Origin: Paragordius varius
Lineage: Eukaryota > Animalia > Nematomorpha
Direction: 5' to 3'
Length of the DNA stretch: 64,000 nt
Assembly: GCA_964247055.1 (NCBI GenBank)
Contig: OZ176057.1
Coordinates: 2,418,001 to 2,482,000, forward strand
The notes under the pieces are model-generated. The model saw nothing but the letters and a program-made list of their open reading frames with translations, had not been told where the DNA came from and made no database searches. This document shows, one piece after another, positions 25 through 64,000 of this stretch; position 1 is the first letter of the stretch; each line of letters starts with the position of its first letter. A program made the position numbers and the translations under genes.

Positions 25-1054
25 AGACGAGCCCAATATATGAATCTCAAAATAATCTATCATTATTCGATTCCTTCATGGATTCAACAATCAATGACAG
101 CAAAAATGAAACAACTTTAATAAATGAAACAAGTAGTAGTATTGAGAACAAAAACAATAAAGACCAATCCCAAACAACACCAGTTTCAAAAATGATGGTG
201 GATAATAAAGATGGAACCTTGAAATTTAATGCATCTAACCAAGGTTAATATTTTGGGTATTTTGCGTTTTTTAAAAAAAAGGATAAATTTTTCATATATT
301 TCACGTTTTATTCTTTTATATTCGATTTATAATTTATTTATGGCACTTGCAAAAAAGTTTTGGCAAAATAACTTTTATTAAAAAAGTATACGAGAAAAAA
401 ATTTAATTTATTGTGAATATATTTTTTGTTTGAAATATTATCATAATTGAATGGTAAAATACCATTAAATTTAATTTAAATTATCCTGTTTTGATATCTA
501 AAAGAATTTTGGTTTTTTTGAAAAAAAAATAATATCTATATCAGAACGTAACATAATAAATATATATAATTATAGCTCTTCTGAGTGGATTTTTCTTTAA
601 TATTTATCCATTAAAATTATTTTTAAAATAACTTAATAATTATATTTTTTGATATATATATACCATTTACAGTTCAAATTCACCCTTAAACAATTCAAAT
701 TCACCCTCGAACAATTCAAATTCACCCTTGAACAATTCAAATTCACCCTCGAACAATTCAAATTCACCCTAAAAATAAATTATGTGTTTTCGAACTAATA
801 TAACTCATTATTAATATAAAATATATCTTTATGGCATAATTAATTATTTTTTTCAGTATTATTTTAATTTAAAACAAAATTTTATTTTTTAAAAATATAT
901 TAAAATATAGGTAATTTTTAATCTTAAAAAACATGTTATTTATTTGAGGGTGAATTTGAATTGTTCGAGGGTGAATCTGAATTGTTCAAGGGTGAATTTG
1001 AATTGTTTAAGGGTGAATTTGAATTGTTTAAGGGTGAATTTGAACTGTAAATGG

Positions 1055-1086
<32 letters not shown>

Positions 1087-4000
1087 TGTATATATCGTAT
1101 TTCTCTATTACCATTTTGTTTGTTAACTTTCAAACTTTATTAATTTTTTTAATGACCCTTATATTGGGTAAGAGAGTTACATATATATAAAAAATAAATA
1201 ATCCAATTTTTATTAACACATTTTTTTAATTTATTCACCATAATTTTCATGTTATTTGTCTATAATTTTTTTATTTCTTTTGTTTGATAAAATCGCAGGT
1301 CAATCCACCAGTTCAGTTATTAGGAGAGGTGAACTTATGGCTGAATTAGATAAGTTGGCTAATGAAATACCGTTATGGGAAAATGCCCTGGTTGATGTGC
1401 ACGTGACCCGAGAGCACGTGACCCCACATTCAAAGTATGTTTTTGAAATGTATATATGGTGAACATGATTAAATTCTTTGTCTATTGTGTTGCTGATGAG
1501 AATACTGGGCCTGATATTGCTATTTGAGTAACGTTCTATTTTATTGAAAACCATCAAATCGGCTCATTTGTTGTATAAAAGCTGTTAAGTTACATATTTT
1601 TTATTCTTATCGAAGTAAGAAATATATGCAAGTGTGAAAAAACTGGCAGAAATTCATATTTAATAACTATCAATGATTTTTATAAAGATGTAAAAGAGAT
1701 TCTGAAAATTAGCTTAAACGGCCTTGTTAATGAAAAACGCATATATATATATTAATAATTTTTATGAGCCTTTTTAAAAAATATATAATGTTTTTTCAAT
1801 AATATATATATATATATATAATCGTTCTAATAAAGGGTAACGGGTCGCATTTTCAGCTTATATAAGTGGTAAGCCATCTACAGAAAATATATAAACACAT
1901 GGGAATCAATAGATTTTTATTGGATTATTTTACAAATACAATGCATACATATAAAATATTTTTTTAAATTTGAAAAGCGTTGCTAAGCTAACCTTTTGTG
2001 CTAAAATATGGCAAAAAATCGTATTGATATTATATACCATTTGCAATTCAAATTCATCCTTGAACAATTAAAATTCACCCACAAAATAAGTTGTGTTTTT
2101 GAACTAAAATAAGTCATTGTTAGCATGAAATATATCTTTATGGCATAATTTATTATTTTTTTCAGTATTATTTTTATGTAAAACAAAATTTTTATTTTTT
2201 AAAATTTTTAAAAATTAGTAAATTTTTAATCTTATATATTTTATTTGAGGGGGAATTTGTATTGTTCAAGGGTTAATTTGAATTGTTTAAGGGTTAATTT
2301 GAATTGTAAACGGTATATCATGTAGACTTATTCTTTGACACTATTATTAATATTAACCAATTTAACACATAAAAGCATTATTAATTATATATTGTTTACC
2401 TTTGTGTAGTGTTTGGCAATATAAATTTTTATGCCTGCTTTGAAACAGCCTAAATGCTTATTTTTGGTATATCGTACAATAAACCGTTTTTAATATCCTA
2501 AAATCACTTATTGTGGTGAAAAAATCTTATTTTATAAATTATATTTATATGTTACAAAACATTTTTTTGTTATTTTTAATATATCATCTATATATTTAAA
2601 AAAAGTGAAAATGCTGGCTTTGTGATCTGGTACCGGAAAACCGGTAGACCCATTCAAATCCAAACTTCAAAAAAATATAATCATTAATGAATGCCCCGAC
2701 AATAGCTTCGCCATTTTTTGAAATAGGCCCCCAATTCGGGCCCACCCACAGAAGTCCACAAAAATCGTGTCTTTGAGACAATTTTCCGGAGAACGTGTTG
2801 GACCATTCAATTTCAAATATGATTTTTGTTTACTTATTTTCGATTGCGCCGAACATAGTCGTCTCGCTTTTTTAACTTAGGCCCTCTTTTTACCCGCTCC
2901 CCCCGTAAAATGCCATTTTTTTCAAAAAGTCCACAAAAATAATTTTTTAATTCTATTTTTCGCCCTAGGTGTGAGACCGTAAAATTTCATTAAGGATTCT
3001 ACATATTCCCTGTTAAAAGGCAAAAATTTTAGTAAAGCGTTTCTTTGATGATAGCTACTGGGTAAGGACCTACCTGCTAAAAACTGATTCCTCGTGTAAC
3101 TTTGTGATCTGTTTCCGGAAAACCGGTGAACCCAATCAAATCCAAATATCGAAAAAATATAATCATTAATGAATGCCCCGACAATAGCTTCGCCCTTTTT
3201 TGGAATAAGGTCCCCAGTTGAGGCCTACCCCGTGTGAAAAACGGGTTGACAATTTTCCGGAGAACGTGTTCTCCATTCAATTTCAAATATGATTTTTGTT
3301 CACTTATTTTTGACCGCGCCCAACATAGTCCACTCACTTTTTTGATTTAGGCCCTCTTTTTACCCGCTGCCCCCGTAAAATGCCATTTTTTTAAAAAACA
3401 AAATCCACAAAAATAATTTTTTTAATCTATTTTTCCCCCAAGTAAACAATATAGTATGAATGCATTGTTTTAAATCCTATAAAATCATATTTAAATAATG
3501 TGTAGAAATAATCCACATATGTGGATCATTCCCCCAGAAGTCCGAAGGACTTCCTCGTGCTGCGTTGCAGCACGAGATTTACGCTTGTAATAAAATAAAA
3601 TTAAATATTGTGAGAATAGAAAAAATACCTGTGCCACTTAGTTTTTTTATTGACAGGTAGGTTTGTTTTATATTTAAAGTTAAAAGAAATTGTCGAAAAT
3701 TGCATTTTCACAAAAAGAGGTAAAAATGGGTCACTCACAAAATAGTCGTCGGTCAGTTAACGTATCTAAACCCTATATCTATTGAAATAATTTATTTTAT
3801 AATTTTCCGCCCCTGTTTTAGACGCAAAAAACTCACATGTTCACACAAACATGATTACACATTTACAAACCCAAAAGATTCAACTATGACTGCGGACTCA
3901 AAAAAACACCATCTATTTAATAATAATTTTGATACCTGTCTACCTGTTTTGTGTGGAGCTTTAAGACCACCTCCTACATACATATGTCCCGTGGGAGATC

Positions 4001-7000
4001 ATGTAGCCGCTTATGTTAAAGATTTAAGCCCTAAACCCTACAACAAACCTTGCATTCTCTTGCAATGCAATATGGATTCAAATAAGATGCCATCTACAAA
4101 TTGTAACATGTTTAAAGAAATGAATCCTTCTGGAATAATCTCTAATAAAATATCATTGAAGAACGCGTTAGATCGACGTGCCTCTTTGCGTTCCTACAAC
4201 GATGATGAAAGTGGAAAAATTAACAACCCTTCCCCCAAAAATGTTAAAAATTCCATCATTCTAAATAAGGCAAAGTGGGATCCTTTATCTGTGATTTTAC
4301 CCAAAAACATGAACCATAACTTGCAAATAAATTCACCAACCACCAATGCTAAAAAAACTACTAATAATGCCCTATTTGTTAAACCAAACAACTGTGATAA
4401 TGTCCATTTAACATTACCCGTGCGTTTGACTAGGTTGCCTTATTTTTCTATTGTATTAATTAATACCATTTTGAAATATATCATTTACAATTCAAATTGG
4501 CCCTAAAAATAATTTATGTGTTTTCGGGCTAATATAACTCATCATTCATATGTCATATATATCTTTGTGGCATAGTTTATTAGTTTTTTAGGGTTTCCGC
4601 ATTATATTTATTTTAGACAAAATTTAATTTTATACAAATATAAAAAATTATACTTAATCTTAATAAACACATATAGTATATTAGATTTTCAGTATTTAAT
4701 TTAAGCCAAAATTTAATTTTATACAAATTTTTTTATCTTAACACATATTTATTTTTGGGGTAAATTTAAACTGTTTAAAGGTGAATTTGAATTGTTTAAG
4801 GGTGAATTCGAACTGTAAATGTTGTATATATTAATTATATATAGAAGGAGAAAAACTGAACCCCCGAATGATATTCGCAAATATTTGGCCACATCGTTAA
4901 ATGCTTCAGTTTGTAATTCAACTCCAGTGACTGATTTTAAATCACACAACACACGGTATAAAAAATGATTTATTTTATAACCGTAATAAATTAATAAATG
5001 CTCTCATACAATAGACACTTTTCCTTAACGTAATAAATTAATAAATGCTCTTTCTAACATACAATTGATGCTTTTCCTTTAAATTAGCGCCTACGCTGAT
5101 TAGCTTCTGATAATTATCTTGTACTTTGTCGGTTATAAAATATATACAGTAATATTAGATCATGTAAAATTAGGTATATTTTTCCACAAATTTGTGTAGC
5201 TATTTTGGAGCTTTTATCGTAAGTTAAATATGAACCAAGTTTTAATCATAGCTTTAATATATTTCTAAGAAAAATCAATATAATTAAAAAACGATCAGGC
5301 TGTATTTTCCCACAATTAGGATCAATACTCTAATATATTTTTTATATCATTTTATTTAACAATGTTTTCTTTTTTATTGTATTATTTAGCCCAACATCGC
5401 ATTACCACCATCGATCTTTAAAATTTTTAAACGATACAGACAGTACTCAACCAATAATAAATTTTAACTCTCAAACCTCTTTAACAAATGATATTAGCTC
5501 AGGAATGGATAATAGATTAGATTATGGAAATAATTTTATAACTAAAACTAAAAAATCAAAACAAAAGGGTGAATCAAGTGAAACAATCATAAATAGTTTA
5601 CCTAATCGCCTTAGAAACGGATATAAACTTGCTTCACCCCCTAACATTTGCAGCTGTAAATTATTTCATGAATCTCCGCCGGCCATTAATACCACCCATA
5701 ATACTAGGCATAAGAATTGTGCTACATTAACAAGCAAAAAAAGCGTTGAAAATGACAACAATGAAACTTTTAACAATAATACAAAAAGTCGACATGCGAC
5801 GAATTCAGTAAAACGGAAAACCTTTCAAACTTTTGTTAATTCTCCTAACAAAACTACTTATACTTGTAATAATATTGCGGTGAACAGTAATGTAAGTAAT
5901 AATGTAAAAAAGCCAGCATTACTCAAAGACCCAAAATTGAATAGCAACCAGCCTAAAAATGAAATTATAAGTAGTAATGAACCGTACACCAGTACAGAAG
6001 AGGATACCATGAGTAGTATTGATGGGGAAGATAATATATGGATTTTGGGGCAAGTTTTATCGTTTGAGCCAAATAGCCACCTACAAAAAATGCACAATAC
6101 AACTACCATACATTCAGATTACCCTTTTTTTCCTTCAGGAACCAAAAATCAATTTGGAGATAAAAATAGTTATAAGTCAACATCTATCCAAAATCGGAAC
6201 ACAGACATAGAAAGGAATAATAATAATGATAATACTTTTGATGAAAAAAACGCTAAGAAACGTGTGCCTAACCGTAATCTTGGCCTTAAACCTAATGAAA
6301 ATCTGACAAGAATGCATACATTTTTAGCTTCACCGCCAACAGATAAGTTAGATGATTTGACAAAGGATGATTGGAAAAATTATTATAAACAAACCTTGGT
6401 GATAGAATCAGGCACATATGAAATCCTAGATATTGATGAATGTACTGAGTAAGTTTTGTTTTGTCTTTTTCTAAATACCAATATTCTATATGATTTGAAT
6501 AAAACTAGCTACTAATCAATAATTTTTTTTATTTCCATTGTTAAATTAGAAAATATTATGTGGATGCGAGTCATATTATACCACTGCCTAAATATAAAGT
6601 CGATTCAGACCTTACACCCTACGCTGTATACCCAAACGGAACAGTATATATCTATATATATAAAATAATTTAATTTTTCCTCCTATATACAGTAAAATTT
6701 AAAGTATAAAGATAAAATTTAAACACTAAAAGTCATACATTTTTTATTGGGATAAGCTTATTTTTATCCTTTGTTGTAGAGATGTAAATTGGAAACACAA
6801 CACTCTATTATATCTCTTGCGTTTTTTTGTAATCTTAAAGGTTATATATAAGCAAAATTATAAAGTATTGCCTTTGCCTATATTTATTAGTTAATTGTTA
6901 ATTTTTACGTTACATCTTTTTACAGTTAGTTTTAGCAAGGTACCCTCAAACCACATGTTTTTACAAAGCTTTGATTCAAGAACCCCCAAATACCAGTAAT

Positions 7001-7120
7001 GGACTGTGTTACAGTGTAGTTTTTGAGGATACACTTTACCCTGATGGATTTAGTCCGCCCATATATGTACCCCAAAAATATGTTATACCCTACAAACGAG
7101 GCAACGTAACATCCAAATAA
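25..7120 (+). CDS. SGF29: SAGA-associated factor 29 (tandem Tudor H3K4me2/3 reader), 5'-partial, greatly expanded
   Basis: Phase-consistent GT-AG exons 25-243, 1299-1434, 3822-4433, 5390-6448, 6550-6643, 6926-7120 (TAA). Motifs RRGELM..LANEIPLW, LCGALRPPPTYICPVGDHVAAYVK, DGEDNIWILGQVLSF, YEILDIDE, IIPLP and LVLARYPQTTCFYKALIQEPP..YSVVFEDTLYPDGFSPPIYVPQKYV match the order and sequence of animal SGF29/CCDC101 as I recall it. About 770 codons lie in the window. Confidence 0.93.
663..1054. mobile_element. MITE family A copy with 21-bp subterminal tandem arrays (reference copy)
   Basis: TIR CCATTTACAGTTCAAATTCACCC...GGGTGAATTTGAACTGTAAATGG, about five 21-bp units (AACAATTCAAATTCACCCTTG-like) at each end, flanked by (TA)n. 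It explains the 7-aa periodic ORFs at 936-1133 and 944-1126. Confidence 0.92.
2037..2313. mobile_element. MITE family A copy
   Basis: Same termini (ccatttgcaattcaaattc...gaattgtaaacgg) and internal core as 663-1054, with fewer 21-mers. Confidence 0.85.
2587..3587 (+). mobile_element. Non-autonomous Helitron, composite (internal duplication of the core)
   Basis: 5' A|TCTATATATTTAAAA start; 3' perfect hairpin CTCGTGCTGC-gtt-GCAGCACGAG 11 nt before CTTG|T; no TSD; core sequence present twice (about 2610-2965 and 3095-3440); homologous to 41778-42334. Confidence 0.85.
4482..4822. mobile_element. MITE family A copy (degenerate)
   Basis: catttacaattcaaatt...gaactgtaaatg ends and family core; lies in an SGF29 intron. 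Confidence 0.75.
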
Positions 7121-8685: not shown

Positions 8686-9013
8686 CCATTTACAGTTCGA
8701 ATTCACCCTTGAACAATTCAATTCACCCTTGAACAATTCGAATTCACCCTTTAAATTCACCCTAAAAATAAATTATGTGTTTTCGAACTAATATAACTCA
8801 TTATTAATATGAAATATATCTTTATGGCATAATTTATTATTTTTTCAGTATTCTTTTAATTTAAAACAAAATTTTATTTTTAAAAATATATTAAAATATA
8901 AGTAATATTCAATCTTAAAAAACATGTTATTTATTTGAGGGTGAATTTGAATTGTTTGAGGGTGCATTTGAATTGTTTAAGTGTGAATTCGAATTGTTTG
9001 TGAATTTGAACTG
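8686..9013. mobile_element. MITE family A copy
   Basis: Starts CCATTTACAG after (TA)n, carries 21-bp arrays, ends next to a long (TA)n. Confidence 0.85.
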
Positions 9014-11129: not shown

Positions 11130-11743
11130 AACTAATTCTACGCCATTTTTATAGTAAAAATTTTTTACAGAATTGTTTATTATAACTCTAAATTAAAGTC
11201 AATTTATATTAAAATCATATCTAACATTGATACAAACAGAAATAGTGGTTTATCCGTATTTTTTTTGGCTAATGTACACATGTCATGTTGGCTAAATATC
11301 TTGGAGTTTCATCCATAAAATAAGTAAAAATTTTTTTGAATCTTTAAATATATTTTAATTCATCAATGTTTGTAAAATTTGGCATTTTCAATTTATTCTA
11401 TCTTTTTAAAATATTTAATTCGTAACAAGCCTCTCCCAACGACTCTTACTAGGAGGACTAAAATGAATGTGTTGCATCAAGTAATAATATACCATTTACA
11501 CTTTATGTTCACCCTAGAACATTTTTACCTTTGAAAAATTCAAATTTACCCTCGAACAATTCAAATTCACCCCAAAATAAATTTCCGTTTCTGAAAATTA
11601 AAAATTACCTGTATTTTTATTTTTAAAAAATGAAATTTTGGTTAAAAACCGAAAATAAATTAAATAAGTTATAAAGATGTATCATATTAATAATATGTTA
11701 AATTAGCTCGATAGAATTTTAGAGTGAATTTGAATTGTAAATA
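11130..11743. mobile_element. Degenerate piggyBac-like family F fragment (to about 11486) followed by a family A copy (11492-11743)
   Basis: F 3' signature aggactaaatgaatgtgttgcatcaag, directly followed by ataccatttac...gaattgtaaat. Confidence 0.65.
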
Positions 11744-20321: not shown

Positions 20322-23300
20322 TTATTGAGGTGGAGTTACTGTATACATTGATTTCGCTTCTTTCTTTTTGATGTAATAGCTTATTACCATGGCCACTCCA
20401 TAAATCTATTATTTTTATAGATGTAATAAAGCATTTAAAATTACAATTACTATCTAAATATAATTATAGATATATATTTTTTAAATACTACATCATTGCT
20501 TTTTGGGGTGTATTTCTACTGCTATTTAAGGTTTAAACCAGAGGTGTCTAACACAAATGGCTTCGAGGGCTGCATTTATCAAATACATATGAGCTGTAAA
20601 AAATATTATATACCATTTACAATTCAAATTCATCCCCTTGAACCATTCAAATTCACCCTTAAACAATAAATTTTACCCTCAAACAATTCAAATTCACCCT
20701 TGAACAATTCAAAATTTCCCTTGAACAATTTAAATTCACCCTAAAATAAATTATATGTTTTTTAAGATTAAAAATTACCTATGCTTTTATATATTTTTAT
20801 ATAAAAATAAAATTTTGTTTTAAATTAAAATAATATTGAAAAAATAATAAATTATGCCATAAGAAATATATCATATTAATAATGATTATATTAGTTTACT
20901 CATAATTTATTTTTAGGATCAATTTGAATTATTCGTGGGTCAATTTGAATTGCTCAAGATTTGAACTGTAAATGGTATATTAGATTACTAACATAAAATT
21001 GTAAAATGCAAACTCAAAAGTGAAATTTTGTTGTAGTTCTTGCCAATTATTGGATAGACTTATTTAGAAAAAAATTCTTAAGCTATAACGATTTTGTTAA
21101 GATTTTGTGAGCATATTTTTGTAAAATCCAAATTTTCGCGGGCCTCACTTAATCCCCTCAGAAGCCGAATGTTGAACACCCTGCTTAAGAATTATAAACA
21201 TCGCCAGTTATTTATTATTGATAGCCGGATTTTATATTCAGTAAAGAAATTCATTATTGAGGATTAACATGAGAAAGCATATTAAATTGAGGGTGTCCAA
21301 CACAAAGGGCCTACTGTGATATATATGGGACATTATTAAATATTTTATTATATATCAAACATAAGGCTGTCAAATACATAATAACATTGTTGATTATATA
21401 AACTTATTATTAGAATATTGATTTTGCTAAAATTTTATGAGCATATTTTTGCAAATTATGGATTTCCAAATTTTTTATTTAAATTTTAGGAATACATTCG
21501 TAATTGAATATGTAAACTAACATATGTCTATATCACTATGTTAAAATAATTGTAATTTTTTTCCAAGATTATAACAATGGGTAGTAAGTAGTTTTATCAA
21601 TCACATTATTAATTAATATGCTCCACTTTGCGGATTAAAGTATTTTTATGAAAGGTTTGATTGATTTATATTGTTTCAAAAATTATTTAATATTCATTTA
21701 TACTTTTTTGAATAAATATTATATATTCAAAAAAGCTTACCAGAATTAGCGCCATAAGGATGCTAGATATACCATTGCCTAAAATGCCAACGGAATCTCT
21801 CTACAAATTATAAAACATTTTTTTTTTCGTAATAATTAATGACTTAAAAAAATAATTTTATATAGTGAGAGGTTAATGCAAAAATTATACCGAATAAATT
21901 AGATTTATGAGCCCAGATATAATCATGATGGTTATTGCTTTGGGTAATGTAACCATCCATGGCATAAATAAGTGTCGCCTATTCTATTTAATAAAAGTAA
22001 TAAAAAAATTAAATTTTAGATGAATTAAATAATCTACGTTTATTAAGTTACAATGTCGAAAATAAAAAGTGTATTTAAAAGTCTCTTTATGGGTGTAGAA
22101 TAAAATGAATTTATAGTTTTTTTGGGCAAATTAATTTATTTTGCGATTTCATCAAAAACTTGTACGTAAACAAATAAGTTTATATGCACCAATTTATATT
22201 CTTTTTAACGAAAATTGATTCTCTGTATATTAAATTTAAAATTGCCATATATAAAATATTCAGACGGCAACTTGTTTTTATATGTTTTTAAGAATCGCAA
22301 CAAAATAGTTTATTTGATTTAACACTTTGTGACTCTTTTGGGTAATTTTATATCCCAGAGCGATTTGAATTCATAAACTTAAAAATATGACTTTAGCCTT
22401 TTAGGCGCCCAATATATTTTTTTGTTAAAAATGTAAATTAATAAAATCCTCATCTCAAACATTTTCAGCTTTAATTTTAAAAAAATTTATATCACTAATA
22501 AAGTAGGCAATAAAATAATGGTTATGATAATTATTAACTCAACTAAGTTAAAGGATGCCTTTTTACCAGTAAAAATTCAATATTTATTAATCTTAAAACA
22601 GCTGTTTAGTTCAATTTCAATCATGTGTGTTGGAACTGTCCCAATTTTAGTCTCTTAAGGTTACAAAACTATAAGCTTTTTTATCTAATACAGGAGAACA
22701 ATGTTTGATGATTAAATTTTATCTAAAACAATTATTAAAATATAATTTCGTTACAAAATTGTCGGATATAAAACTAACTCAATATGTCACCGCGAACAAA
22801 AAAGTTAAAAGGCATTTAGTGTTAAAAAGGCAAACTGAATGAAATGGATACTTCATTAATTATAAATATAAGAATACCTTACTGAATAAATTCCATTGAG
22901 AAGTGCTATTGAAGTTGCGACCATAATGATTGAATAAAACAAGTTTATTGACCATGCTATGTTAAACACTTGAACAAAAAAAACATTAATACATATTATA
23001 AAAATGAAATTTTTTAAACAAAAAAAAATTAAATAATAAATACTTTTTCCCTCTTTCCGGGTCCATAAATTGGGATAATTGTTACGAAGGCGATTATACC
23101 AAACAAGCATAAATATGCGTGTAAACACATCTATCACAAAATAAATCTAAACAGAAATGAAAATTTTTTTAATACAGTCATGTATCCTTCCTTTATTATA
23201 TCAAAAATTTATTTTTTTTTCGTTAAATGACTATATATGGTAAAGAATGGAAAAAACACGAGCTCTATGGTATTAACATCATATTTACAAGAATTACCAT

Positions 23301-28206: not shown

Positions 28207-31200
28207 ATGCCAGTCTCCAGTAATTTTGGAAATTTGTCAAATAATGTTTCATCGGGAGCCAATTGCTTTACCGGATTACCTACCAATACTCCATTATATA
28301 TGGCCGCTGAAAAACCGTTACATTTAACGTAAGTCAAATCTCTATTTAGTTCTTATTTTAAAATTAATTGTAATAGAAATGTTATAAACTTGATCGATAT
28401 CCTTAATTTCCCAATATATATCCTAAATTCATTTTTGTTATATAACCCTTATCCCCAAAATATTTATAATGTATTTATATAGTTACTTATCATACACCAG
28501 TCCATAGCATTTATAAAAGTCATTTTTTTACTTTATTTTGCAAGCAAAAGCTATAATATAAAGCATAACAACATTCCACATTGTTTTTATTTTTTTGCAA
28601 AAATTGTAGTTATTTATTGGATTTTCGTACCGAACAATGCCAACTTTTCTTGAAGCACAAATGTAATCGACACAGACCCTACACCTGTTTTTATTGGCAT
28701 TTTGCCAATCAAAGACGCAGAAGACCGCTTAAACTTATGGTTTCTGGGAATTTTAATTATCACGCTGATATTTATTGCGCAACGTATGACGAGGCCACTG
28801 GCTTATGCCCCACTGGTGACACTTGTCCTTTTTTGCATCGCACATCAGGGGACACGGAACGTCGATATCATTTACGCTACTATAAAACGGGTATGACAAA
28901 GATAAATTTGATAAAAGTTTTTCGATTCGTAACGATAATTTACGGGATGGAGTTTTGATTTCTATTTGCATTGAATTGTGATAAGTTTTTAAATGTTTAA
29001 AGGTGGATTTTTTATGTTAATCTATTAAATAATATATTTGTACATCAAGAATCTTGGTTAATTGTTTAATGTTTTTAACAGTTTTTTAAATTATTTAAAA
29101 TATTGCAATTAAGCGTTTTGTGTGAATTCATATAATAAATAATCAACTTAATATGAAGAAGTTAATAGCTTATGGTTCACATTAATACATAGTTATAATG
29201 CTATTCATAAATATGGCATGATATTTGTGGTATTCAAACGTTAATAAAAAAAGTTTTTTTAAAAAAAGTGTAAAACGAGTATTGTATTTCAAATTTTTAT
29301 ATAAAATTATTTGACAACCTCTTCAATCTATAGCCATTGGTGCTCATAAAGATATAGGGTTGACTAAAAAGGCTAAGCAGAGATTTGGTATCTATAAAAA
29401 TGTAATAAACATAAGAAATTACCTATTTTTTGGTCTCTAGAATACTGTGTTCATGAAACGGATACCAGAGGATTTTGCGTTAAGAATGGGGTTCATTGTG
29501 CTTTTGCTCATGGAACTTTAGATCTTAGAGAACCCGTAATGTCAACGGATGAAATTATATTGGACGAATTTATCCAGCGAACTTTATCGAAACACGTTTT
29601 ACAAAATTGTCTGCTTTTACAACAACAGCAACAAACACAACAATCGTCTGCCCCCGGCTCAACTAATCAAATAAAAGCGATAACAACCCTAACTTCAGTT
29701 TCAGATTCTAATTCAAAGAACGTTCCTAATAATTTTAATTCAAAAAGTTCTAGTAATGATTTTTTGGCCTCTGTACTTTTGAATTCAACACCTGATGGTA
29801 ACGAGTTGACAAACTTTAAAACGCAAAAAGCTAATTTTCAAGCTGCAATAATAACTACAAGAGGTACTAAAGACACAAGCACGATAGAAAATTCAAAATC
29901 TAATTCATGCTTATTGCTCGCAAAATGCGCCCCCAATGATACTTCTAGTCAGCTTTTATCCGTTAGTTTTTCCAATAATTCATTTGCTTTTGCATCATCG
30001 CAACCTTCTTATGCATGTTCTTCTACGGCTCAATCAAGTAAAAATATTAGTTTTTAAATATAATAATCTTGTTACAACTTCATTCATTATTTTATGATTA
30101 AAATATTAACCCAATTAGAAGACGATCCTATTGTTGTCATGAGAAATGCTAATAAATCCACCGTTTTCCCAAATTTCAATAACCTAAATAATGTATTACT
30201 GAGTTGTAATGGATTAAATCCAAATAAAACAAAAGATGACGAAACCCAAAAGTTATTCAATAATGAAAATAAAATGCCGAAACTTGAAACATCAGTATTA
30301 TCTGGAAACGTAACTATTAATGGATGCATATCACGAATTCCAAAGTATTTTAAATTGGCTTATTAGCTTTAGCTTTTTAAGGGCTTTTTTGATTAAATAT
30401 ATTAATTTTCTGATTGAATCCATAATTTATCCAAACGCATTATTTTGGTTAAATATGTATTTTTATGCTTTTTTTCCATATTTGACCATATTAGTATCAA
30501 TGGGAATTTCACTTCAAACTTTTGTAATTTACCAACAACACACGTGAAGCCATTCGTTGATTATGCTCTTACTGATGGTAATAACAATAATAATAATAAT
30601 AATAACACTCATAATAAAAACATTGTTAATAATAATTTATGTAACAATATTAACAATGATAATTTTTTTCTCGAAGACAAACCATTAAATACGATGATGG
30701 CCTTAGACGGAAATTTTCCCATGAAATGTTTAACGGAGAGTTTGGATTTAAGTGCTTTGGTACAAAATTGTTCTCGGCTTTTAATGGCTCAAAATCTGTC
30801 AAATAATTCCGCAAATGCTTGCGTCAAAGAAAATTCCAATATTACTGCAAATAATAATACGACTGAAATTGTAAATGATAATAAATGCCTATCTGGAGCT
30901 TTGGAAACCAAAGGACCCTTTATAAATGGAATTAGTAAAAATTTTAAGCTTCTCTTTTAAAACATTATTTTTTAACCTTATTTTTTTCTGTTTGTAGGTA
31001 AAAATTTTACCGTTGTCGAAAATGGTCAGCTTCCCTTTACATCAACAATGCTTAAAAGATTTGATGGACATTCAACATTACCCGAAAATATGAAGTATAG
31101 AATGGGGTACTTTTAAAAATAATTTTTTGATATCGCCTTCATACCCTATTTTGTTCCTTTCAAAGGAGGTAAGCAAGCCTGTTAGAGTTTTTATTTTTTG

Positions 31201-34200
31201 GTTCGATATTTTTATGGTGTGGTTTAATAACTATTTAGAGTTTGTTAAGGACAGCATTTGATTGGAGATTAAACTAGTAAAAACAAAAATAAATAAAAAA
31301 ACTATATATAATTTTAATTTACTTATAATATTATATGGATAAATTTTAATATTCGAATAAAAAATAAAAAAAACTGCTGAGTACTTCAATCAAAATATGA
31401 AAATGGGAATTGATTATGACAATTATACTTTTTAATTTTTGCGCACATACAATAAATAACCCTTTTATTGTTATATCGGCTTTATAATTGATTAAAAGAG
31501 TGAAAATTATTCAACTAAAATTTTATTCCTTCTTAATCTATACATATTTTTCTTTATTCAGAAAGAACCAACATATATAATTTTTCTAACATCACTAATA
31601 AAAACACCTACGGAGCTAATAAATATTTATTTCCCTTTACACTGTAATATAATATAACTTTAGAATCATTCCACCTTTTTATTTGGATAATTATATTTAT
31701 TACTAATTTACAATGTAATTTATAGAAACAATCAATTATCAAATAATCCAAGTTTATTGCAACAACCCCAATTTTCGCACCAAAAATATTTGCAAAATCT
31801 CAAGCGGCGCCTACAAATCCTTTTGTTAAAGAATACAACGGCCATGTTTAATACACATTCAACTTCGGTTAATGCCTGTGTAAATTTTATAAATGGAAAT
31901 TCGGTGGTTAATGGTATTTTCTTTATTATCACATATAATAAGAAAATATTAGAGTGTTTTACTTTGTGATATGAATAATGTATCAATTATATGTGTCAAA
32001 CCCAAATTTTTACGTGATAATAATGAAGGACATTTTTAAAGCTGTAAAATAATTGAACATTAAAATGCAAATGCAAACTATTTATAAAATTTTTGAATTT
32101 AGAAACATGGAACGATTAAAATGGCTATCTAACACGTTCATTGTGGTTTTACTAAATTATTTAATGTGTATAATCATATTTAATCATTTTTTATAATTAT
32201 ATAATATATAACCATAAATATATATTACAGTATTTAATGGTTGCTTACCGGTATAGTAGGATCGATTCGAGTGTAGGGAAAAAAAGAAAGGAATAATTGT
32301 TTATATTTAACATTTTGTTGTTTTTTCCATACACTACTGTGTTGTAAATTGCTCTACTATAGCAGTGTGAATTAAGCAACCATTAAAATTCATACTGTAT
32401 TTCTTTAACTTCCCCATTAAGTTTTTGGATGTTGGGTTTGTCCATGTGTGCATTGAATTACAAGTTTATGTGGGCCTTTGAATTTAATTTTAAATTTTTT
32501 TTTAATAAATCACATAAATTAAAACAACTCAAATAATTTATTGCCATTTTTCAACTTGCGACATATTTGTGACTTAAGCTTTTTTTAAGTTTTAAATTTG
32601 TAAACAAATTTATAGTTAATTTTGATTAGAATTTTATAACTTATCTTAAATTTTAGAACAGGGGTGTCCAACATACACACTACTTTTTAAAATATTTCTG
32701 CAGCCCGCGGAAAAATTTAAATAAAATATTTTAAGCAATTTAAATAAAAATGTTATTCTTAACAAAATTTTTTTGGTTGGACATCCTTGTTATAGAACAT
32801 ATCTCAACGTTTATGAAGAATTATAAATTTTATAATATATTTTTTATATTAGACAATGCTACCAATGAAAATGGAAGTCAGAATCTGCAAATCCGGTAAG
32901 ATTTTTTTGTTACAAATATACAGTAGCGTATGATAATTAAACATTACATTGGTTAAACATTTATGTAAGGTTTTAATTGGTCAATAATTTTATTTTTCCA
33001 AGATATTTATTGTATCTAATCTAGTTATATATTTTAAAAAATAATAAAATTTATTTGTTTTGGGCCCACGTTATGAAACGTTCAAAAAATTTACAATTTG
33101 CTAAGTTTTGTGGGGAATTAACGAATTTATAGAAGTTACAATGTAAGGAAATAACATGAAAACTTAATGACAACTATTTCTTTAAAAACCACAGTTTTTG
33201 ATTGTTTTAAACCCAATCTTATTTATGTAATTGTTTTAAGTCATTAAGGCATAATAGAGAGTTATTAATAAATATTTTATACTGGATCATTTTAAAATAT
33301 GGGTTGTCTTTCTTTATAATTTTATATCTTTATATAATTGGAATTATGATCTGTATAAGAAAACGCATGAATGACACGAAGAAATTGACGCAATTAAAAT
33401 TAGCAAATTTATATCCCACGCTTTTGTTGGAAAAAGATAGATCTCTCCAATGCGAAGATTATATATGGGCAGGTTAATTTTTTTTTCAATATTTTCGAAC
33501 TTTTAATTTTTACATGTTTTTTGCCTAAATCTCGATAAAAATGCGAAACAAGAAATAATAAAAACATAAAATTTTTAAAATCCTCTTCACATGTATATAT
33601 TGGCCACATTTTTCATTATTATGCCTATGCAACTCCGAAATAAAACAATATTCATAATTTGATGGAATCGCTCATTTTAATATTATTGTGTTGTTTTAAA
33701 GAATTTTATTTAAATAAGATTTTAATTATTTCTAATCACATTTAAAGTCAATATTGGAATTTGTATTTATAATTGTTTAATTTCTTTTGTTTCGCATTTT
33801 TATCATTTATATGCTCTCTTTCTTTTACATCCTGCAATTCATTTAAAAATAATCATATTTTTGATTTTTAACCAACATGCCCAGTGTTGTTATTATAAAT
33901 CAATAGCCTAAAAAATAATTATTTGATAATTTTATTTTTAATTTTTTTTGCCAATTTTAAAGGTGCTCAATTTTGAACAAATAATATAACTCCAAAAATA
34001 GGGCTTTGTATGATAATCAAAGGTAATTTATATCCTATTATAATAAAAAAGGGTTGGGGTGTTCCACTCTAAATGTATTTATTCATTTTTCATTTAAAAA
34101 GTTAAGTAAAAAGCAATCAATATACATTATAAAACGATTTTTGTTTTTCCTCTTCCAAAATATAAAATAATTGTTTGATAATTGACATGATTCATATGTT

Positions 34201-37200
34201 TTGGTTCTCTGTAACTTTCTTTCACAAAAAAATTGTTTTATATCTATAATCAGTCATGTAACCTTTATTTTATGGAAAAAAATTATTTTCTTTCGTTTAT
34301 AAATATTTGGTAAAGAATGAAAAAAACAAGAGCTCTATGGTGATATTAACAATATTACATTCACCAATAATGTATAAGAATTAATTATCATAGAGCTCTT
34401 GTTTTTTCCATTCTATACCAAATATTTATACATACCCATTTAACGGGGGAAAAAATAATATAAATTTTTGATAAAATAAAAAAGGATACATGACTATTTA
34501 ATAAGTTAATTGGACAACTAAAAAACCATTTTATGTTACTCCTTTTTACCATACAATAAAAGCTATTTGAGAGAAAACTTTAATGAAAATAGATTGATTA
34601 ACTAATTTGTGGGAAAAAAACGCTCCTATATGCTTTAAATTTTTGATAAAATAACGGATACATGACTATATAATAGATTATTTATTTCCCTTTTTAAACA
34701 AATTATAAAATATGAATAACCTAAATAAAGATGGTTTATATGTGTTGGTTCATTACAAAACGGAAGTGTGTACGAAACCACCCAGGCTTTGTAGACAAGG
34801 TTATGCATGTCCAGCTTATCACAACGATAAAGATCGTCGTAGATCACCTGCTCTTTACAAATACAGGTAACTTTTTTCCCGCCTTTTAAAAAATCAAAAA
34901 TTGCTACAAAAAAGACTAAAGACACAAATACCTACCTATTATTACTTTTTTTACCTCTATATGATTGCATTTGGAATTTATCACAAATATACTGTATTTT
35001 GTGCAAAATGATAGGTTATTTTTTTATAAAATTTATGCTAAATTATATAATTTAAAAGATTGATTGAACTAAGTGCCCATTAAATGTCTCGCCATAAGTA
35101 ATAAGCGAATCGACCAATTTTTTGCTTTTAGTAATTGTTGATGCTGATTAAGATATTGCCAATCGATTAAGCCAAGCTTGTAAAAAACTCATTTTAAAGA
35201 TAAAACAAAATCAATTATAATATACTGGCGTTGACGGGTCAAAAACTTACTACTAAATAATTATAATAATGGCTCTTTAAAATTACGATTTATAAAAGTA
35301 GAATTTAAGGTCACAAATGCAATATATGTCTTTAAAAATTTGGTTAAAAAATTTAAAATAAGCCTAGAAAATGGTTAATAATTTGTTAACTGCTTGTATA
35401 AAACACTATACTATATTAGTATTTTAGGGGTTTTCTCTGTAATTAAAGTTTCACTCTAAATATATCTTTCATATCTGTTAGATAATATTTGTTTTACATT
35501 AAATCTATTGAAATAAGTATGGATTTTAAAAAAGTATTATATGTATATATACCATTTACAGTTCAAATTCACCCTTAAACAATTCAAGTTCACCCTTGAA
35601 CAATTCAAATTTACCCTAAAATAAATTATCTGTTTTTAAGATTAAAAATTACCTATATTCTTTATATTTTTAAAAAAGAAACTTTGTGTGTGTAATCAAA
35701 ATAATACTGAAAAAATAATTAACTTTGCCATAAAAATATATTTAATTATAATGATGAGTTATATTAGACCGAGATTTCATAATTTCTTTTTTTAGGGTGA
35801 ATTTGAATTGTTCGAGGGTGAATTTGAATTGTTTAAAGGTGAATTTGAATTGTAAATGGTATATATATATATATATATTAAATAAAAAATATATGTTTTT
35901 TAGTTTACACAAAATATTTTCTTGAATTTGATTTAGATCTACACCGTGTCCTATAGTTAAGCATGGGGATGAATGGAGTGATCCTCACACCTGTGAAAAT
36001 GGAGATGAATGCTCGTATTGTCACACTCGTACAGAACAACAATTTCATCCTGAGGTAAAGGGCAAAAAATTAGGTTCTTGAAATTTTTTAGTTGCGGCGA
36101 AATTTTCGTTTCCAAGTCTCTTTCTATGTTATTTTACTTCAGAGGTCAAGGGCAAAAAATTAAGTTTTTGGAATTTTTGGGTTTTGGCAAAATTTTATTT
36201 TCCAAGTTTCTTTCTATTTTTTTTTATTTCAGAGGTAAAGGGCAAAAAATTAAGTTTTTGGAATATTTTAGTTTTGGAATAAATTTTTACTTTTTTTAGA
36301 TTTAGCCGAAATTTTTAGATTAAAGATTGCTGTTTCTTATTGTTCCATTTACTTCCAACAAAGAATTTCATCCAGAGGTAAAAGGCAAAAAATAGGTTTC
36401 TACACCAAAAAATTATAATTTTTTTAGATTAAACTGAAATTGTAAAAATCCAAAAGATCGTTGTTTTTGTCATAAAGTATCTCCCATTTTTTACTTTGAA
36501 TAAATAATTTTACACTGGCAAAGGCAAATATAATACCTTTTTTATTATTTTGCTATAGATTTTTAAAACTACCAAATGCAATGATATGATTCAAACCGGA
36601 TATTGTCCTAGGGGGCCATTTTGTGCTTTTGCTCATTATGAACGTATATATATATATATATATATATAGTTTCTTTTTTTGGATTTTTTAGGTTCATGAA
36701 AATGTTTTACATTCCCCCTTATTTCACATTTATATCTATTTTTTTCATAAAACATATTATATAGAAGAATTATCGACTGAACGCCGATACCTAAATCAAC
36801 TTATGAGTTTGAATGGTTCAGTCGTGCCGGCACCCCTGTATAATATAAACAATGCCAATAATCTAGAAAATGAAACTAATAATAATAATAAAATGAATAT
36901 GTCATTTAATGATTTCTATAAGCGACCATTAGGCTCATTTTACAATTTTGGTGAAGAGAATTTTTTCATCAACAATGATCATAATATAAAATCGGATTGC
37001 GATCATTCGAATTTGCTGGTAAGTATGCAGGAAGCCAGTTTAAACGAAACGATTAATCAATGGTTACAAACTAATGCCCAGTATAATGCTAGTCTTTTAC
37101 AAAATCGCAATAACAATCCTAATCCTAATAAACAGTCAAACGCTGTGAATAGGAATATTTTACAGCAAAATGATTTTAGTAGTAATAGTTATCAAAATGG

Positions 37201-56017: not shown

Positions 56018-59000
56018 ATGTCAACTCAAACTGATTCCATTTTAAAACCACAATTTCAAACACAAGCCTCGATTCCTAAAAAATGCCCCTCCGATTTTAT
56101 ATTTTTAAAGATTGTAGGAGAAGGAAGCTTTTCAACAGTTTTAATTATTTTTTTATCTTACTTTTAGGTATACAAAGCAAGAGATGTCACCTCAAAACGT
56201 GTTTATGCAAGTATATTATATTTTCCTTCCATATGTATAATTATCGGACATCAAATAATTCTTTTAACTTTCATATATTTATCATTCGTTTAATTTATTT
56301 TTAAAATTGATTTTCTGTTCCATATGCCCTATGAAATTTTGTCAATTTATCTCCTAAATAAAATTATATAGTTTTTAAAATTGTGTTTTTTTTCAACAGT
56401 TAAAGTTATGGACAAACGTCACATATTAAAGTTTCGAAAGCAAACTAATGTTCGCCGTGAAAAGGAATGTTTACAATTATTAAACAAACATCCAAGTCCA
56501 TTTTTCGTGAAACTGTATGCCACTTTTCAGGACACTGAACGATTATGTACAATTTCTTTTTATTTTATATAATTTTCTATCCCAAATTGGTTATTTTTAG
56601 TTTAATTGAAATAATTTAAAAAGTATTACTTTTTTGACCGGCCTTTTTTGTCTCTTTTTACCTCATTTTTCGGGTAATACCACCATAATATTCAAATTAA
56701 CAATAGGATATTCTGCTAATAAAATCAAATTATTATATAGAAAAACATGTCGAAGGTTTTACATGCTTTTACATTATTTATTTACAAATGTTTAAAATTC
56801 TATTCACGCGTCATTTTTAATAAAAGATATATTTAAAATGTATTTTTATTTTCACCGATTACTTATGATGGTTGTAATGTAAATTTGATAATTTGTGATT
56901 TGTGTTACACACGTTAAATAATAATTTGAAATAAAAAAAATATTAATTTAAAATTTTTGGAGTTGGTGATATATCTTAAAATTTTAACATAATTTAAATT
57001 TTAAAAGATATATGGGTTAATAAAAAGTGATTTTTTTTATTTAAAATTTGGTATTAATTTTACAAAAAAATTTTTTTTGGAGGAAATTACACATCAAACC
57101 GCTAATACAGTAGCGTAAACAAATAAATGATGATAATAATATTGTATAATTTTTTGCGAAAAGAATTGGTAAAAACTGATTAAATTTAATTTTTTTAATG
57201 GTTGGCTCATTATAAGCCATAATAACAAACTAGTCAGTTTATAGAACGAATTCCTAACTTCAAACTCGTTTATAAATCGGCAGAGTGTTTAATGATCAGC
57301 ATAAGCTATTGATTTATAGATATGGTTTTTTTAAAAAATTATAATGAGGGGGTGGTCATGGGTTACTCCGAGACTTCCTGTGCGACCCGCCAAAAATTTA
57401 GTAATCCATAATTTGTAAAATTAGGCTCACAAAATGATAGTAAAATGATATTTTTTAAAATTTTTAAATAATTCAACTCAAATGACAGAAACTAGAAAAA
57501 ACTGTTAGATAGTGTCGGCATTTTACAGTTTACGTTTCTAATGTATTTGATTAAGAATCTTATATATATCAAATTGCGAAGACATTTGTGTTAAATAGGT
57601 TTTTTGATAATATATATGCCTTTGGTATTAAACTGGTAAAAATTAGCCAAAAGAGATAATAAAATATACACTGTTTTAAGTGTTAATATATTTATGTCAA
57701 AGCTTTTTTGTGTTGAGAGTTTATGTTAGTGCATAATATATGAAATTCCTATATACATGCAATTTATAAATATTTGTTTAAAAATATATTTATATATATC
57801 CTTTTGTTTTAGACATAGTTACAACCTATGCCCTTAGGGGTGAAATTTTGGCCTACTTAAATATTAGAGATATTTTTATTCCCAAAGATTTGCCACAAAA
57901 TGAAAATGATACGTCATCATCATCATCAACCAGTTATGATTCATTGCTAGTTTGTCGCTTTTACGCTCAACAATTAATTTTAGCCATAGAACATTTATAT
58001 CGCATTGGAATTATACATCGTGACATAAAACCTGAAAATATTTTGCTGGATGATCATTTTAACATACGACTCATTGATTTTGGTTCGGCCGCACTTGTGG
58101 ATAAAAAATCGTCTGCCCCACCAAACTTGGAAACTTTATCGGAAAAATCTTGTGTTTCAAATTCTTATCACACATCTCCGGGTTTTATTAAAAACAGCAA
58201 CAATAATTCTGCTCATGTATTATCAAATTCGGTAGGAGGACTCACAGAAATGAAAATCTCAAAATCTGCTAATGAACTTGAAACAATATCGAATGGTGAT
58301 GATATTCCCGTTGATAACTCCAACATTGGTTTAACTGCAAAACAGCCACAAATAACTTTAAAAGATGAAATCACAAACGAAACGCCTAACAATGCTCTGG
58401 ATGAAGAATTGAGTCACGAAACTCAACTTTTGAATTTGTCATCAAGGCTTCATATTAGTAGTATTACTACGACTACATCCAAACCTGATACACTGAAATC
58501 TGATGATTCGGGTTACAAGTCATCTGAAACTAAAACTGTTTTATCACACAACACTGCACATCTGTTTGAAAAACCATGTCACATTGATGGTAATTTAAAT
58601 AGTAGTGAAAATGCAAATACAAACAATAACCGTAACCATAACAATAATGAAAATATTCATTGTCAAGAGAACAAAAAGAATGTACGTCGAGGCTCGTTCG
58701 TAGGTACGGCACAGTATGTTAGCCCTGAAGTGCTGACCGGGAAAACTGTGGATTATATGTATGCATATTTTAAATTTCATTTTCGAATAATGAGATTATT
58801 TAAGAACATTTTTTAAAATTGAATACAGTTCGCTCCATGGCCCTTTAAAGAAAAACGGCCTATTATTTGCTGACCCATATTTAGTATTCTTTGTGATGAT
58901 AGGATAAACTATTTTTATTTTAATTAACAATCACAGTTAAATAGAAAATGTTAAATTTAATTTTTAGATGATTTTCGGCTTATTAGAGTTACATATGAAC

Positions 59001-62000: not shown

Positions 62001-62459
62001 TTTTTTTATCATATAAATATTGAAAATGTAACTAAAGTTTTAATTTTTGTGAATTTGAAGATGTAGTATATTTTTAAGAAGGGCGGTAGTTTTATTATAA
62101 TTAATATCAAGGTTGTGAAATATAAATCGATCATAGGATAGGATGTATTGAAAGAAATAAAAATTTAAAAGTTGTGTTGTTTATTTTAAAATTGACAGTT
62201 ATTTTTGGGTTATGTTTATCGTTTTATTTATCAAATATACCATTTACATTTCAAATTCAACCTAAAAATAATTTATGTATTTTTTAGGCTTTAACTTCTT
62301 ATTAATATAAAATTTAGTTTGATGGCATAGTTTATTATTTTTTCAGTTATTTTAATTTTACACAAAATTTTATTTTTTCAATGTATAAAAAAATATAAGT
62401 AATTTTTAATTTAAAAAACACTTAATTTATTTTAGGGTGAATTTGGAATGTAAATGATT

Positions 62460-62528
<69 letters not shown>

Positions 62529-64000
62529 GAGAGAGAGAGAAATTTAAAAAAAATCCATTTAAATAAAAATGATTTTTATAAAATCTACTTAATTACAATT
62601 GTAAAATGTGAAGTTATACCAAATTTAATTCCCTATTCATTCTTATAGGCTATATCCCAAAAGATTAATTTCTATGGTTTTCTTGATATAATTTTAATTT
62701 TTACTTTTTTATTTTTTTAATTATATAACGTTTACTGTTTAATGAATGATGACACAATGTCCATCTAATATATTTATTTGTGAATTTGATATATAGGGTT
62801 AAAAATATGGTTTTATTAATAAACCTTTATGTTTTTTGTTTATATTATTTTTATGTTTTAAGTAAGTTTAATAATTATAATTATGACAATGTCTAAATAA
62901 GTATTATATTTATATCTGGATCTGATAGATTCTAAAAAAATATCAAAAGAAAAATTGAATGCAACCAAATCATCGCCAAGTTTAAAGGCCTTACATGTTT
63001 TGAAACGTCGCCATTCTCATCACAAAGGTAATGCCTGTTTTTGACTTTAATAATTAACTTTTTTATTTTTTAATATTTAAGTCTACATTCTATAAGAGAG
63101 TAATTTCTTGCAAATAAATAATATGTATTAAAAGATAACATTAAAATTTTAATATAACTTAATCAGTGCCTGTTTTTTTTGAAAAATAAATAATTTTGAC
63201 TTCGGTTCGAAACGGCCCTATAAAATATTATATAAAGTTTTATACTACTAGCCGTATAAAATTTATGAAAAGTTCAAAAACAACAATCAGACGATATATT
63301 ATTGTTAACCTTATTAGGATGTTATATATATATATATATATATATGTATACTTATTATTTAACAAAAAAACTATTTAATTTATAATTTTATTGCTCACCC
63401 CATATATTTACCATTTACAGTTTAAATTCACCCTTGAACAAATCAAATTTACCCTAAAAATTATATGTTATAAACTTATATAACTCATATTAGTATGAAA
63501 TATATCTTAATGGCATAGTTTATTATTTTCAGTATTATTTTTATTTAAAACAAAATTTTTATTTTTTTATATTAAAATATTGGTAATTTTTAATCTTAAA
63601 AAACATATATTTTAGTTGAGGGTAATTGTTTTACCGTGAATTTGAATTGTCCAAGGCTGAATTTGAATTGTTTAAGAATGAATTTGAATTGTTCAAGGGT
63701 GAATTTGAATCCTAAATGGTATAATACATATGATAAACAATTTTTTAGAAATATTTTAATTTTGATAACTGACTTTAGTTTTAATATATATTATATGTAT
63801 ATATATAGTGGAAACGCCTGAAAACAGTAACTGCTCTATGAATGAACAAAAGACAAATTCCTCAAACATTCTTATATCACCTAATGACAATCTTGAACTC
63901 ATAAATGAAAATGGACACCCTAAAACTCATGATTTAAACCCTAAAACTCATAATAACAATAATAATAATCATCAAAATCAAAGATGTTCCAGTATAACAT
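56018..64000 (+). CDS. PDPK1: 3-phosphoinositide-dependent protein kinase 1, 3'-partial
   Basis: Exons 56018(acceptor 56007)-56137, 56168-56210, 56400-56546, 57813-58758, 59115-59183, 59640-59736, 60196-60655, 61209-61306 (or 61327), 61697-61805, 62929-63027, 63809-end, all in phase. Motifs KKCPSDFIFLKIVGEGSFST, YAIK, PFFVKLYATFQD, HRDIKPEN, DFG, SFVGTAQYVSPE, NEYHIFQKI. PH domain not reached in the window; an upstream coding exon is possible. Confidence 0.93.
60842..61022. mobile_element. Tc1/mariner-like MITE family I
   Basis: TA|CAGTATGAGTAAGTAT...ATACTTACTCATACTG|TA; related degenerate sequence at about 10240-10510. Confidence 0.8.
61357..61597. mobile_element. MITE family A copy in PDK1 intron
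   Basis: cattta...gaactgtaaatgg termini with family core; a partial copy is also present at about 59400-59570. Confidence 0.8.
62240..62456. mobile_element. MITE family A copy (arrays collapsed)
   Basis: ccatttacatttcaaattc...gaatgtaaatg, followed by long (TA)n. Confidence 0.78.
62466..62540. repeat. (TA)n then (GA)n microsatellite
   Basis: Direct reading; other long (TA)n runs near 1055, 9017, 24826, 38153 and 53972. Confidence 0.95.
63411..63719. mobile_element. MITE family A copy in PDK1 intron
   Basis: ccatttacag...taaatgg termini with 21-bp arrays; source of the periodic ORF 63636-63821. Confidence 0.85.

Follow-up and report, generated by a model that had tools for sequence, protein, structure and literature searches.

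Asn/Ser/Thr-rich inserts in the SGF29, Unkempt and PDK1 genes of a horsehair worm, probably tolerated expansions of loops and linkers

Introduction

How can conserved regulatory proteins carry stretches of hundreds of asparagine (Asn, N), serine (Ser, S) and threonine (Thr, T)-rich residues within or between their functional domains and still keep the motifs on which those domains depend? The question is raised by a 64,000-nucleotide (nt) stretch of the genome of the horsehair worm Paragordius varius (contig OZ176057.1; C8:2418001-2482000), called the window here, in an assembly that totals 110.5 Mb. The window has a guanine-plus-cytosine (GC) content of 25% overall and 20-31% per 2-kb bin. 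By a scan of open reading frame (ORF) length and codon log-odds, its gene content consists of SGF29, Unkempt and PDK1, all on the plus strand, together with fragments of repeated elements. An earlier note on this DNA had claimed that all three genes bear giant in-frame inserts, and we find that they do: conserved motifs are kept, the frames are open and the codon statistics are coding-like. We conclude that the inserts are probably lineage-specific, hydrophilic, disordered and tolerated, nearly neutral expansions of surface loops and linkers in three single-copy, presumably functional regulators. The insert of PDK1 lies between the DFG motif and the activation-loop serine, those of SGF29 lie in two hairpin loops of Tudor domain 1, and that of Unkempt lies between the two zinc-finger (ZnF) triplets. 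Because the conserved folds and motifs are kept at both flanks, the domains would be normal apart from the inserts, which are expected to loop out of them.

Results

An insert in the activation loop of PDK1

The PDK1 exon encodes an AGC kinase core with an HRD motif, a DFG motif and a SFVGTAQYVSPE activation loop. Its top matches in the PDB are human PDK1 structures, and its best word-search matches are named PDK1 orthologues from insects, spiders, molluscs and amphioxus. Within one stop-free, 344-codon ORF (57782-58813), HRD is followed by DFG, a 187-residue insert and then the RRGSFVGTAQYVSPE motif. The features of this exon are as follows.

57813..58111, plus strand: start of the PDK1 C-lobe with the alpha-E helix (Pfam Pkinase, E=3e-21; human PDK1 is the best PDB match)
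57860-57919, plus strand: second insert of about 20 residues, between helices D and E (gap of 20-21 residues in orthologue alignments)
58016-58024 and 58076-58084, plus strand: HRD and DFG motifs, respectively, within the C-lobe piece 57813..58111
58112..58672, plus strand: activation-loop insert of 187 codons (N 16, S 14, T 10%), within the 344-codon ORF
58673..58729, plus strand: activation-loop serine and P+1 motif (RRGSFVGTAQYVSPE), aligned to human PDK1 and near-invariant in the alignment

The same residue of the human PDK1 chain, residue 186, is aligned at both edges of the 187-residue gap, and the stretch is therefore a pure insertion. It is likewise a gap across 25 aligned short PDK1-like fragments. 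When AlphaFold2 was run on the exon with an alignment built from such fragments (n=25), the predicted local distance difference test score (pLDDT) was 76-93 in the kinase core and 36-50 in the insert, which was modeled as coil without secondary structure. The resulting span from DFG to SPE is 218 residues, compared to 30-92 (median 41) in 93 orthologues. In a library-wide search, the longest span elsewhere among PDK1-type matches was 146 residues. Both motifs could be located in 163 sequences altogether, and no other PDK1-type span in that set is as long as 218 residues.

The remainder of PDK1 lies downstream. The only match in the genome to PH_3, the model of the PDK1 PH domain, is at C8:2485519-2485611 on the same strand, about 3.5 kb past the end of the window, with a score of 28.1 bits (the cut-off is 25); it follows that PDK1 extends past position 64000. 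The approximately 7 kb of DNA linking the kinase and PH domains may contain more low-complexity exons, for example an Asn-rich ORF at 63769-63999. Upstream, a 30-nt GT-AG intron (56138-56167) separates the codons of the glycine loop (GEGSFST) from those of VYKARD.

Two inserts in SGF29 Tudor 1 and a long linker in Unkempt

In SGF29, a compact second Tudor domain follows a first one that is divided into three conserved pieces. Codon log-odds, here and below, are from a model trained on coding sequence outside the inserts.

3934..4023, plus strand: Tudor 1, first conserved piece (PVLCGAL...GDHVAAYVKD), from the PDB search and collinear with the Tudor 2 exon
4024..4433, plus strand: insert 1, part 1, about 137 codons (N 18%), open in a 260-codon ORF (3724-4503); log-odds +0.19
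4434..5389, plus strand: putative phase 2 intron within insert 1, with donor AG/GTTGCC at 4434 and a strong acceptor at 5389
5390..6023, plus strand: insert 1, part 2, about 211 codons (N 16, S 13, T 11%), in a 372-codon ORF (5334-6449); log-odds +0.22
6024..6077, plus strand: Tudor 1, second conserved piece (IWILGQVLSF), placed by eye
6078..6413, plus strand: insert 2, 112 codons (N 14, K 11, T 11%), wholly within the 372-codon ORF; log-odds +0.27
6414..6449, plus strand: Tudor 1, third conserved piece (TYEILDIDE), placed by eye, followed by a GTAAGT donor
6923..7117, plus strand: Tudor 2 in one compact exon that retains the aromatic-cage positions (Pfam SGF29_Tudor, 48.9 bits; human SGF29 at E=1e-17, the alignment having a gap of one residue)

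The Tudor 2 exon is the only SGF29_Tudor locus in the genome. Human SGF29 accounts for the top four PDB matches of the first piece of Tudor 1, at chain residues 14-40 or 29-55, and the match is weak. The IWILGQVLSF piece was placed against the human SGF29 sequence. Searched separately with HMMER, IWILGQVLSF and TYEILDIDE had no match in the PDB or Pfam, being too short, and Tudor 1 as a whole escapes detection by Pfam when its pieces are searched one by one. Insert 1 totals about 348 residues and is split by a single putative intron; with the strong acceptor at 5389, no donor other than that at 4434 brings the two long ORFs together in frame.

Unkempt is identified by matches of ZnF1, ZnF3, ZnF4 and ZnF5, each to an Unkempt-specific Pfam model, and its low-complexity sequence follows ZnF3.

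28569..28890, plus strand: ZnF1-2 exon (Pfam zf_CCCH_5, Unkempt Znf1, E=1.8e-18; donor CGG/GTATGA)
29441..29538, plus strand: ZnF3 (Pfam zf-CCCH_UNK, E=2e-18)
29539..30037, plus strand: linker part 1, 166 codons (S 19, T 10, N 10%), sharing a 219-codon ORF with ZnF3; log-odds +0.29; donor CAA/GTAAAA at 30038
30119..30344, plus strand: putative linker exon 2, 75 codons (N 20%); the preceding 81-nt GT-AG intron keeps the frame; log-odds +0.23
30495..30934, plus strand: putative linker exon 3, 146 codons (N 25%, with a run of nine Asn), in a 180-codon ORF; a 150-nt intron keeps the phase; log-odds +0.18
30998..31913, plus strand: two weaker putative linker exons (30998-31094 and 31726-31913) and the intron between them; the phases fit, and the assignment is uncertain
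34731..34866, plus strand: ZnF4 exon (Pfam zf-CCCH_UNK-like_4th, E=7e-23), the only such locus in the genome
35937..36054, plus strand: ZnF5 exon (Pfam zf-CCCH_11, E=9e-20)

The linker between ZnF3 and ZnF4 comprises at least 166 residues, and about 484 residues along one phase-consistent chain of exons; the mammalian linker has about 30. Good coding signal is limited to the first three pieces (about 388 residues). ORF length by itself is not significant for putative exon 2, putative exon 3 carries (AAT)19, the only tandem repeat within any insert, and the log-odds of the piece at 31726-31913 is just +0.04. The sizes given in the earlier note are corrected by these numbers: about 345 and 110 residues for SGF29 become about 348 and 112, the PDK1 activation segment of about 200 residues holds an insert of 187, and the 555 residues proposed for Unkempt are at the upper end of the range and exceed the chain that we could assemble.

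The short GT-AG introns of the Unkempt linker (81, 150 and 63 nt) are all multiples of three, and between 29398 and 31113 four successive ORFs in one frame are broken only by short patches that contain stop codons. The intron lengths could be a matter of chance (about 1 in 27) or the trace of intronisation in an exon that was once continuous. A separate feature lies directly 3' of the ZnF5 exon, where a 90-bp unit is repeated 2.6 times (36052-36287). Every unit copies the donor end of that exon (GAG/GTAAAGGG...), resulting in a chain of duplicated donor sites.

The inserts look like coding sequence

Seven ORFs of at least 150 codons are present on the plus strand of the window, all of them within SGF29, Unkempt or PDK1, and none of more than 100 codons is present on the minus strand. 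At the stop frequency of 7.4% per codon, the chance of 187 consecutive open codons is about 6e-7. The GC content of the inserts at codon positions 1, 2 and 3 (about 0.35, 0.37 and 0.25) matches that of the conserved exons, and their sense strand is A-rich. The log-odds of the inserts in frame are +0.18 to +0.36 bits per codon, the highest value being that of the PDK1 insert, compared to -0.2 to 0 for chance ORFs. We found no strong in-frame pair of donor and acceptor around the PDK1 insert, SGF29 insert 2 or the Unkempt tail. Inside the PDK1 insert, there is no polypyrimidine acceptor anywhere. By these measures of sequence, the inserts look like coding DNA that is read in frame.

Composition and origin of the inserts

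We determined the composition of nine low-complexity stretches with a total of 1,360 codons, including the C-terminal region of PDK1 and the region after ZnF6. Asn, Ser and Thr make up 16.8, 11.0 and 8.4% of residues in these stretches and 3.2, 4.9 and 6.3% in the conserved parts. AAT accounts for 77% of Asn codons in the inserts, the longest run of Asn is nine residues, and lysine (Lys, K) is not enriched overall. The share of residues that promote order (W, C, F, I, Y, V and L) rises from 26% in the inserts to 37% in the conserved parts and 49% when non-coding DNA is translated. The earlier note had named AT bias as a driver. AT bias can account for only part of this pattern: the inserts contain little I, F or Y, are hydrophilic and have an A-rich sense strand, in contrast to translated non-coding DNA, which is rich in I, L, F and K, and the increase in Ser and Thr is not predicted from AT bias alone.

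Local duplication, the second driver that had been proposed, was not borne out. We found no internal repeat at the protein level, and local 8-mer repeats do not exceed the codon-shuffled expectation in the SGF29 and PDK1 inserts and are at the shuffled level in eight of the nine segments. Apart from the (AAT)19 run in Unkempt, there is no homopolymer or tandem-repeat signature of slippage. An origin from repeats or mobile elements was also considered and rejected, as the two inserts tested (that of PDK1 and part 2 of SGF29 insert 1) are each single copy in the genome. The inserts contain no Pfam domain and have no look-alike in the Atlas. A library-wide HMMER search of 1.84 billion representatives detected no homologue of the PDK1 insert; a word search with the SGF29 exon returned no relatives, and one with the PDK1 exon returned only ordinary PDK1s, with no match to the insert. 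The top match of the library-wide search by summed score (245 bits) was a protein of Tagetes erecta (KAK1434786.1, 1069 residues) with 15 tandem fragments of the kinase catalytic loop. This protein has no relation to the inserts and reflects either a tandem array of exons or an oddity of annotation. The other high scorers were multi-kinase proteins, none of which match the PDK1 insert.

Extent of the tendency in the genome

The earlier note had also suggested a genome-wide process. We sampled twenty random 10-kb loci (200 kb), of which 17 have a GC content of 23-29% and three have 33-42%; one of these three, L008, contains a retrotransposon-like ORF. The sample contained 50 ORFs of at least 120 codons, and 25 plausible coding ORFs were left after repeat-element loci and hydrophobic junk were dropped. 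Asn represents 9.3% of residues in these ORFs, and 11.6% of residues fall in N/S/T-rich windows of 40 residues, with at least one such window in 9 of the 25. As a baseline, 120 PDK1 orthologues of other organisms, mostly animals, have 4.2% Asn and 1.6% of residues in N/S/T-rich windows. SGF29, Unkempt and PDK1 are in the upper tail, with 41% of the residues of their long ORFs in such windows.

Protein families in the genome were surveyed by the coordinates of their profile matches in tables, to which the following gaps and counts refer. Fourteen of about 104 kinase loci (approximately 13%) have an in-ORF insert of at least 50 residues. In 11 of these, two collinear matches in one open frame are 50-135 extra codons apart, and in seven of the 11 the extra codons are in the activation loop; the three further loci have 50-70 extra residues inside one match. 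For example, a kinase domain at C1:3208571-3210061 gives three collinear matches in one 739-codon frame, which implies two inserts of about 110 residues. Among about 30 DEAD-helicase loci, two show gaps of 150-200 codons within an ORF, and a DEAD-box domain at C4:8920070-8921194 has about 200 extra codons past profile position 40 in one 737-codon frame. Two Hsp70 genes in long open frames match their profile residue for residue and have no inserts, and the expansion is therefore not universal. Judging from these small samples, a genome-wide tendency is likely but uneven, with inserts often seen in regulatory proteins and none in the Hsp70 genes that we examined. The inserts are not confined to the three genes of the window, which gives the proposal of a genome-wide process partial support. 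A special proteostasis system, which had been proposed to tolerate the inserts, is not apparent: we found about 5-6 Hsp70-family loci and one AAA_2 locus, with nothing Hsp104-like and no expansion of chaperone loci.

Repeats elsewhere in the window

A 21-bp satellite (unit ACAATTCAAATTCACCCTTGA) forms arrays of 2-6 copies, in either orientation, at 13 intronic or intergenic sites in the window, often adjoined by (TA)n runs. Either a dispersed minisatellite or an array carried by a miniature inverted-repeat transposable element could account for it.

669-770, 947-1048, 2254-2307, 4759-4816, 8692-8751, 8934-9000, 11524-11572: 21-bp satellite sites, first part
20619-20742, 35558-35621, 35794-35853, 38601-38661, 38852-38905, 63636-63710: 21-bp satellite sites, remainder

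A repeated element with ORFs that contain GEAIVGAFINDYIF is represented by two fragments on the minus strand (2599-3346 and 41782-42064), one of which is within an intron of SGF29. In one random locus (L017:509-1979, minus strand), the element has two near-identical tandem ORFs of 138 codons.

Discussion

We propose that the inserts arose in three steps. Extreme AT mutational bias would furnish codons rich in A (AAT for Asn is one); insertions in frame would then build up where length is unconstrained; and selection would purge only stop codons and hydrophobic, aggregation-prone residues. One alternative is that the inserts are selected functional modules, for instance a segment of the PDK1 activation loop with a regulatory or autoinhibitory role, comparable to those of NDR/LATS and Greatwall, a platform for docking or phosphorylation, or condensate-forming regions in SGF29 and Unkempt. 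Such a role would fit with frames that stay open across hundreds of codons in sole-copy genes, with the richness in Ser and Thr as potential phosphorylation sites, and with the independent expansion of the same PDK1 site in several invertebrate lineages. However, the inserts have no domain, repeat or homologue that we could find, and similar sequence occurs in many unrelated ORFs of the random sample. Their composition tracks the bias of this genome, and that of the inserts of other species at the PDK1 site tracks the bias of each lineage (acidic in one Drosophila, S/Q/N-rich in Megaselia), which is what tolerated filler would look like. We therefore regard selected modules as unlikely.

Two other alternatives concern whether the stretches reach working proteins at all. 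They could leave the mature messenger RNA as introns or exitrons, always or in some isoforms, so that the proteins have loops of normal length. This genome does have unusual introns, including the one of 30 nt in PDK1, our gene models were drawn from sequence alone, and SGF29 insert 1 and the Unkempt linker are partly on separate, skippable exons. Nevertheless, constitutive introns would not remain open for 112-211 codons at the observed frequency of stops, nor would they have coding-type codon statistics or an A-rich, hydrophilic reading, and the PDK1 insert, SGF29 insert 2 and the Unkempt tail are without a strong flanking splice pair in frame. Removal from the transcripts thus seems quite improbable. 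That the three genes are decaying pseudogenes or assembly artefacts might be suspected from Tudor 1 of SGF29, which is barely recognised in profile searches. Against this, each gene is the sole copy in the assembly, the catalytic and binding motifs are intact, long frames are open, and the inserts are unique sequence rather than repeats; we consider decay or misassembly very improbable.

Several points weigh against our reading of the inserts as tolerated expansions that are part of a wider tendency. Neutrality is an assumption. Neither the word searches nor the library-wide HMMER search returned a transcript-derived protein of this species. The donor in SGF29 insert 1 (GTTGCC) is weak and was picked partly because it fits the frame; likewise, the last two pieces of the Unkempt linker are weak, with splice sites chosen to fit the phase. 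The genome-wide estimate is based on 200 kb of sequence, table coordinates and a crude baseline from one family.

If transcripts confirm the inserts, P. varius would be an animal in which signalling and chromatin proteins from single-copy genes tolerate disordered inserts that are hundreds of residues long, one of them inside the activation loop of a kinase and two inside a Tudor barrel, and would provide a metazoan counterpart to the cases in Plasmodium and Dictyostelium. This would raise the questions of how far mutational bias can reach into proteomes, which loops are able to absorb additional length, and how aggregation is avoided without an evidently enlarged set of chaperones. There are practical consequences as well. 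The inserts break profile matches and gene models, so that estimates of gene content and gene loss in this lineage, and orthology pipelines, are prone to artefact. A bolder possibility, and to us a doubtful one, is that this lineage has undergone Plasmodium-like inflation of loops and linkers throughout its proteome, sufficient to split conserved domains or hide them from profile searches and gene predictors. SGF29 Tudor 1, which is missed by Pfam, and the PDK1 PH domain, which scores near the cut-off, would be instances of such hiding.

Comparison with known systems

Low-complexity, Asn-rich insertions inside conserved proteins are well known in Plasmodium falciparum (PMC3749963, PMC7534687, PMC13438671), where poly-Asn repeats run beyond 100 residues (PMC13438671), compared to nine for the longest run of Asn here. 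Both genomes are extremely AT-rich, and in both, conserved domains keep their motifs although hydrophilic, Asn-rich stretches lie inside or between them. In each case the inserts are unconserved and are predicted to be disordered; in P. falciparum they occur throughout the proteome, albeit unevenly, and our small samples hint at a similar spread here. The present genome differs in being that of an animal, and its inserts are complex N/S/T-rich sequence rather than homopolymers, with no enrichment of Lys. Asn is also less abundant overall, at about 9% in our random sample compared to about 14% in P. falciparum. Dictyostelium discoideum likewise has an AT-rich genome and many proteins with tolerated low-complexity regions rich in N and Q. 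Its tracts are mostly homopolymers of trinucleotide-repeat origin, whereas the inserts in the window have no tandem-repeat signature save for the single (AAT)19 run. The likeness to these two organisms that was drawn in the earlier note therefore stands, as the AT-rich genome, the motif-sparing inserts in frame and the enrichment of Asn are all found here.

Among animals, the site in PDK1 has precedents. Other invertebrate PDK1s have low-complexity sequence at the same insertion point, which follows DFG and precedes the basic-basic-x-Ser-Phe motif; the span from DFG to SPE amounts to 81-146 residues in Drosophila jambulina, Megaselia scalaris, Anopheles farauti and one eukaryote from a metagenome. 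The statement that such inserts are unusual in animals was thus too strong for PDK1. The insert described here differs from these in its 218-residue span and in being Asn/Ser/Thr-rich, rather than acidic or Gln-rich. The post-DFG site of PDK1 is a recurrent soft spot that is filled by low-complexity spacers whose composition differs by lineage. Long, non-conserved stretches between DFG and the activation-loop phosphorylation site, with the fold intact, are also a property of the AGC kinases Greatwall/MASTL and NDR/LATS. Those inserts are family-wide and of known or suspected regulatory function, whereas that of PDK1 is lineage-specific and lies in a kinase that is usually compact, with no function indicated. 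We found no description of such inserts in the literature on horsehair worms. The inserts in SGF29, Unkempt and PDK1 are a real animal example of a phenomenon that is already known from Plasmodium.

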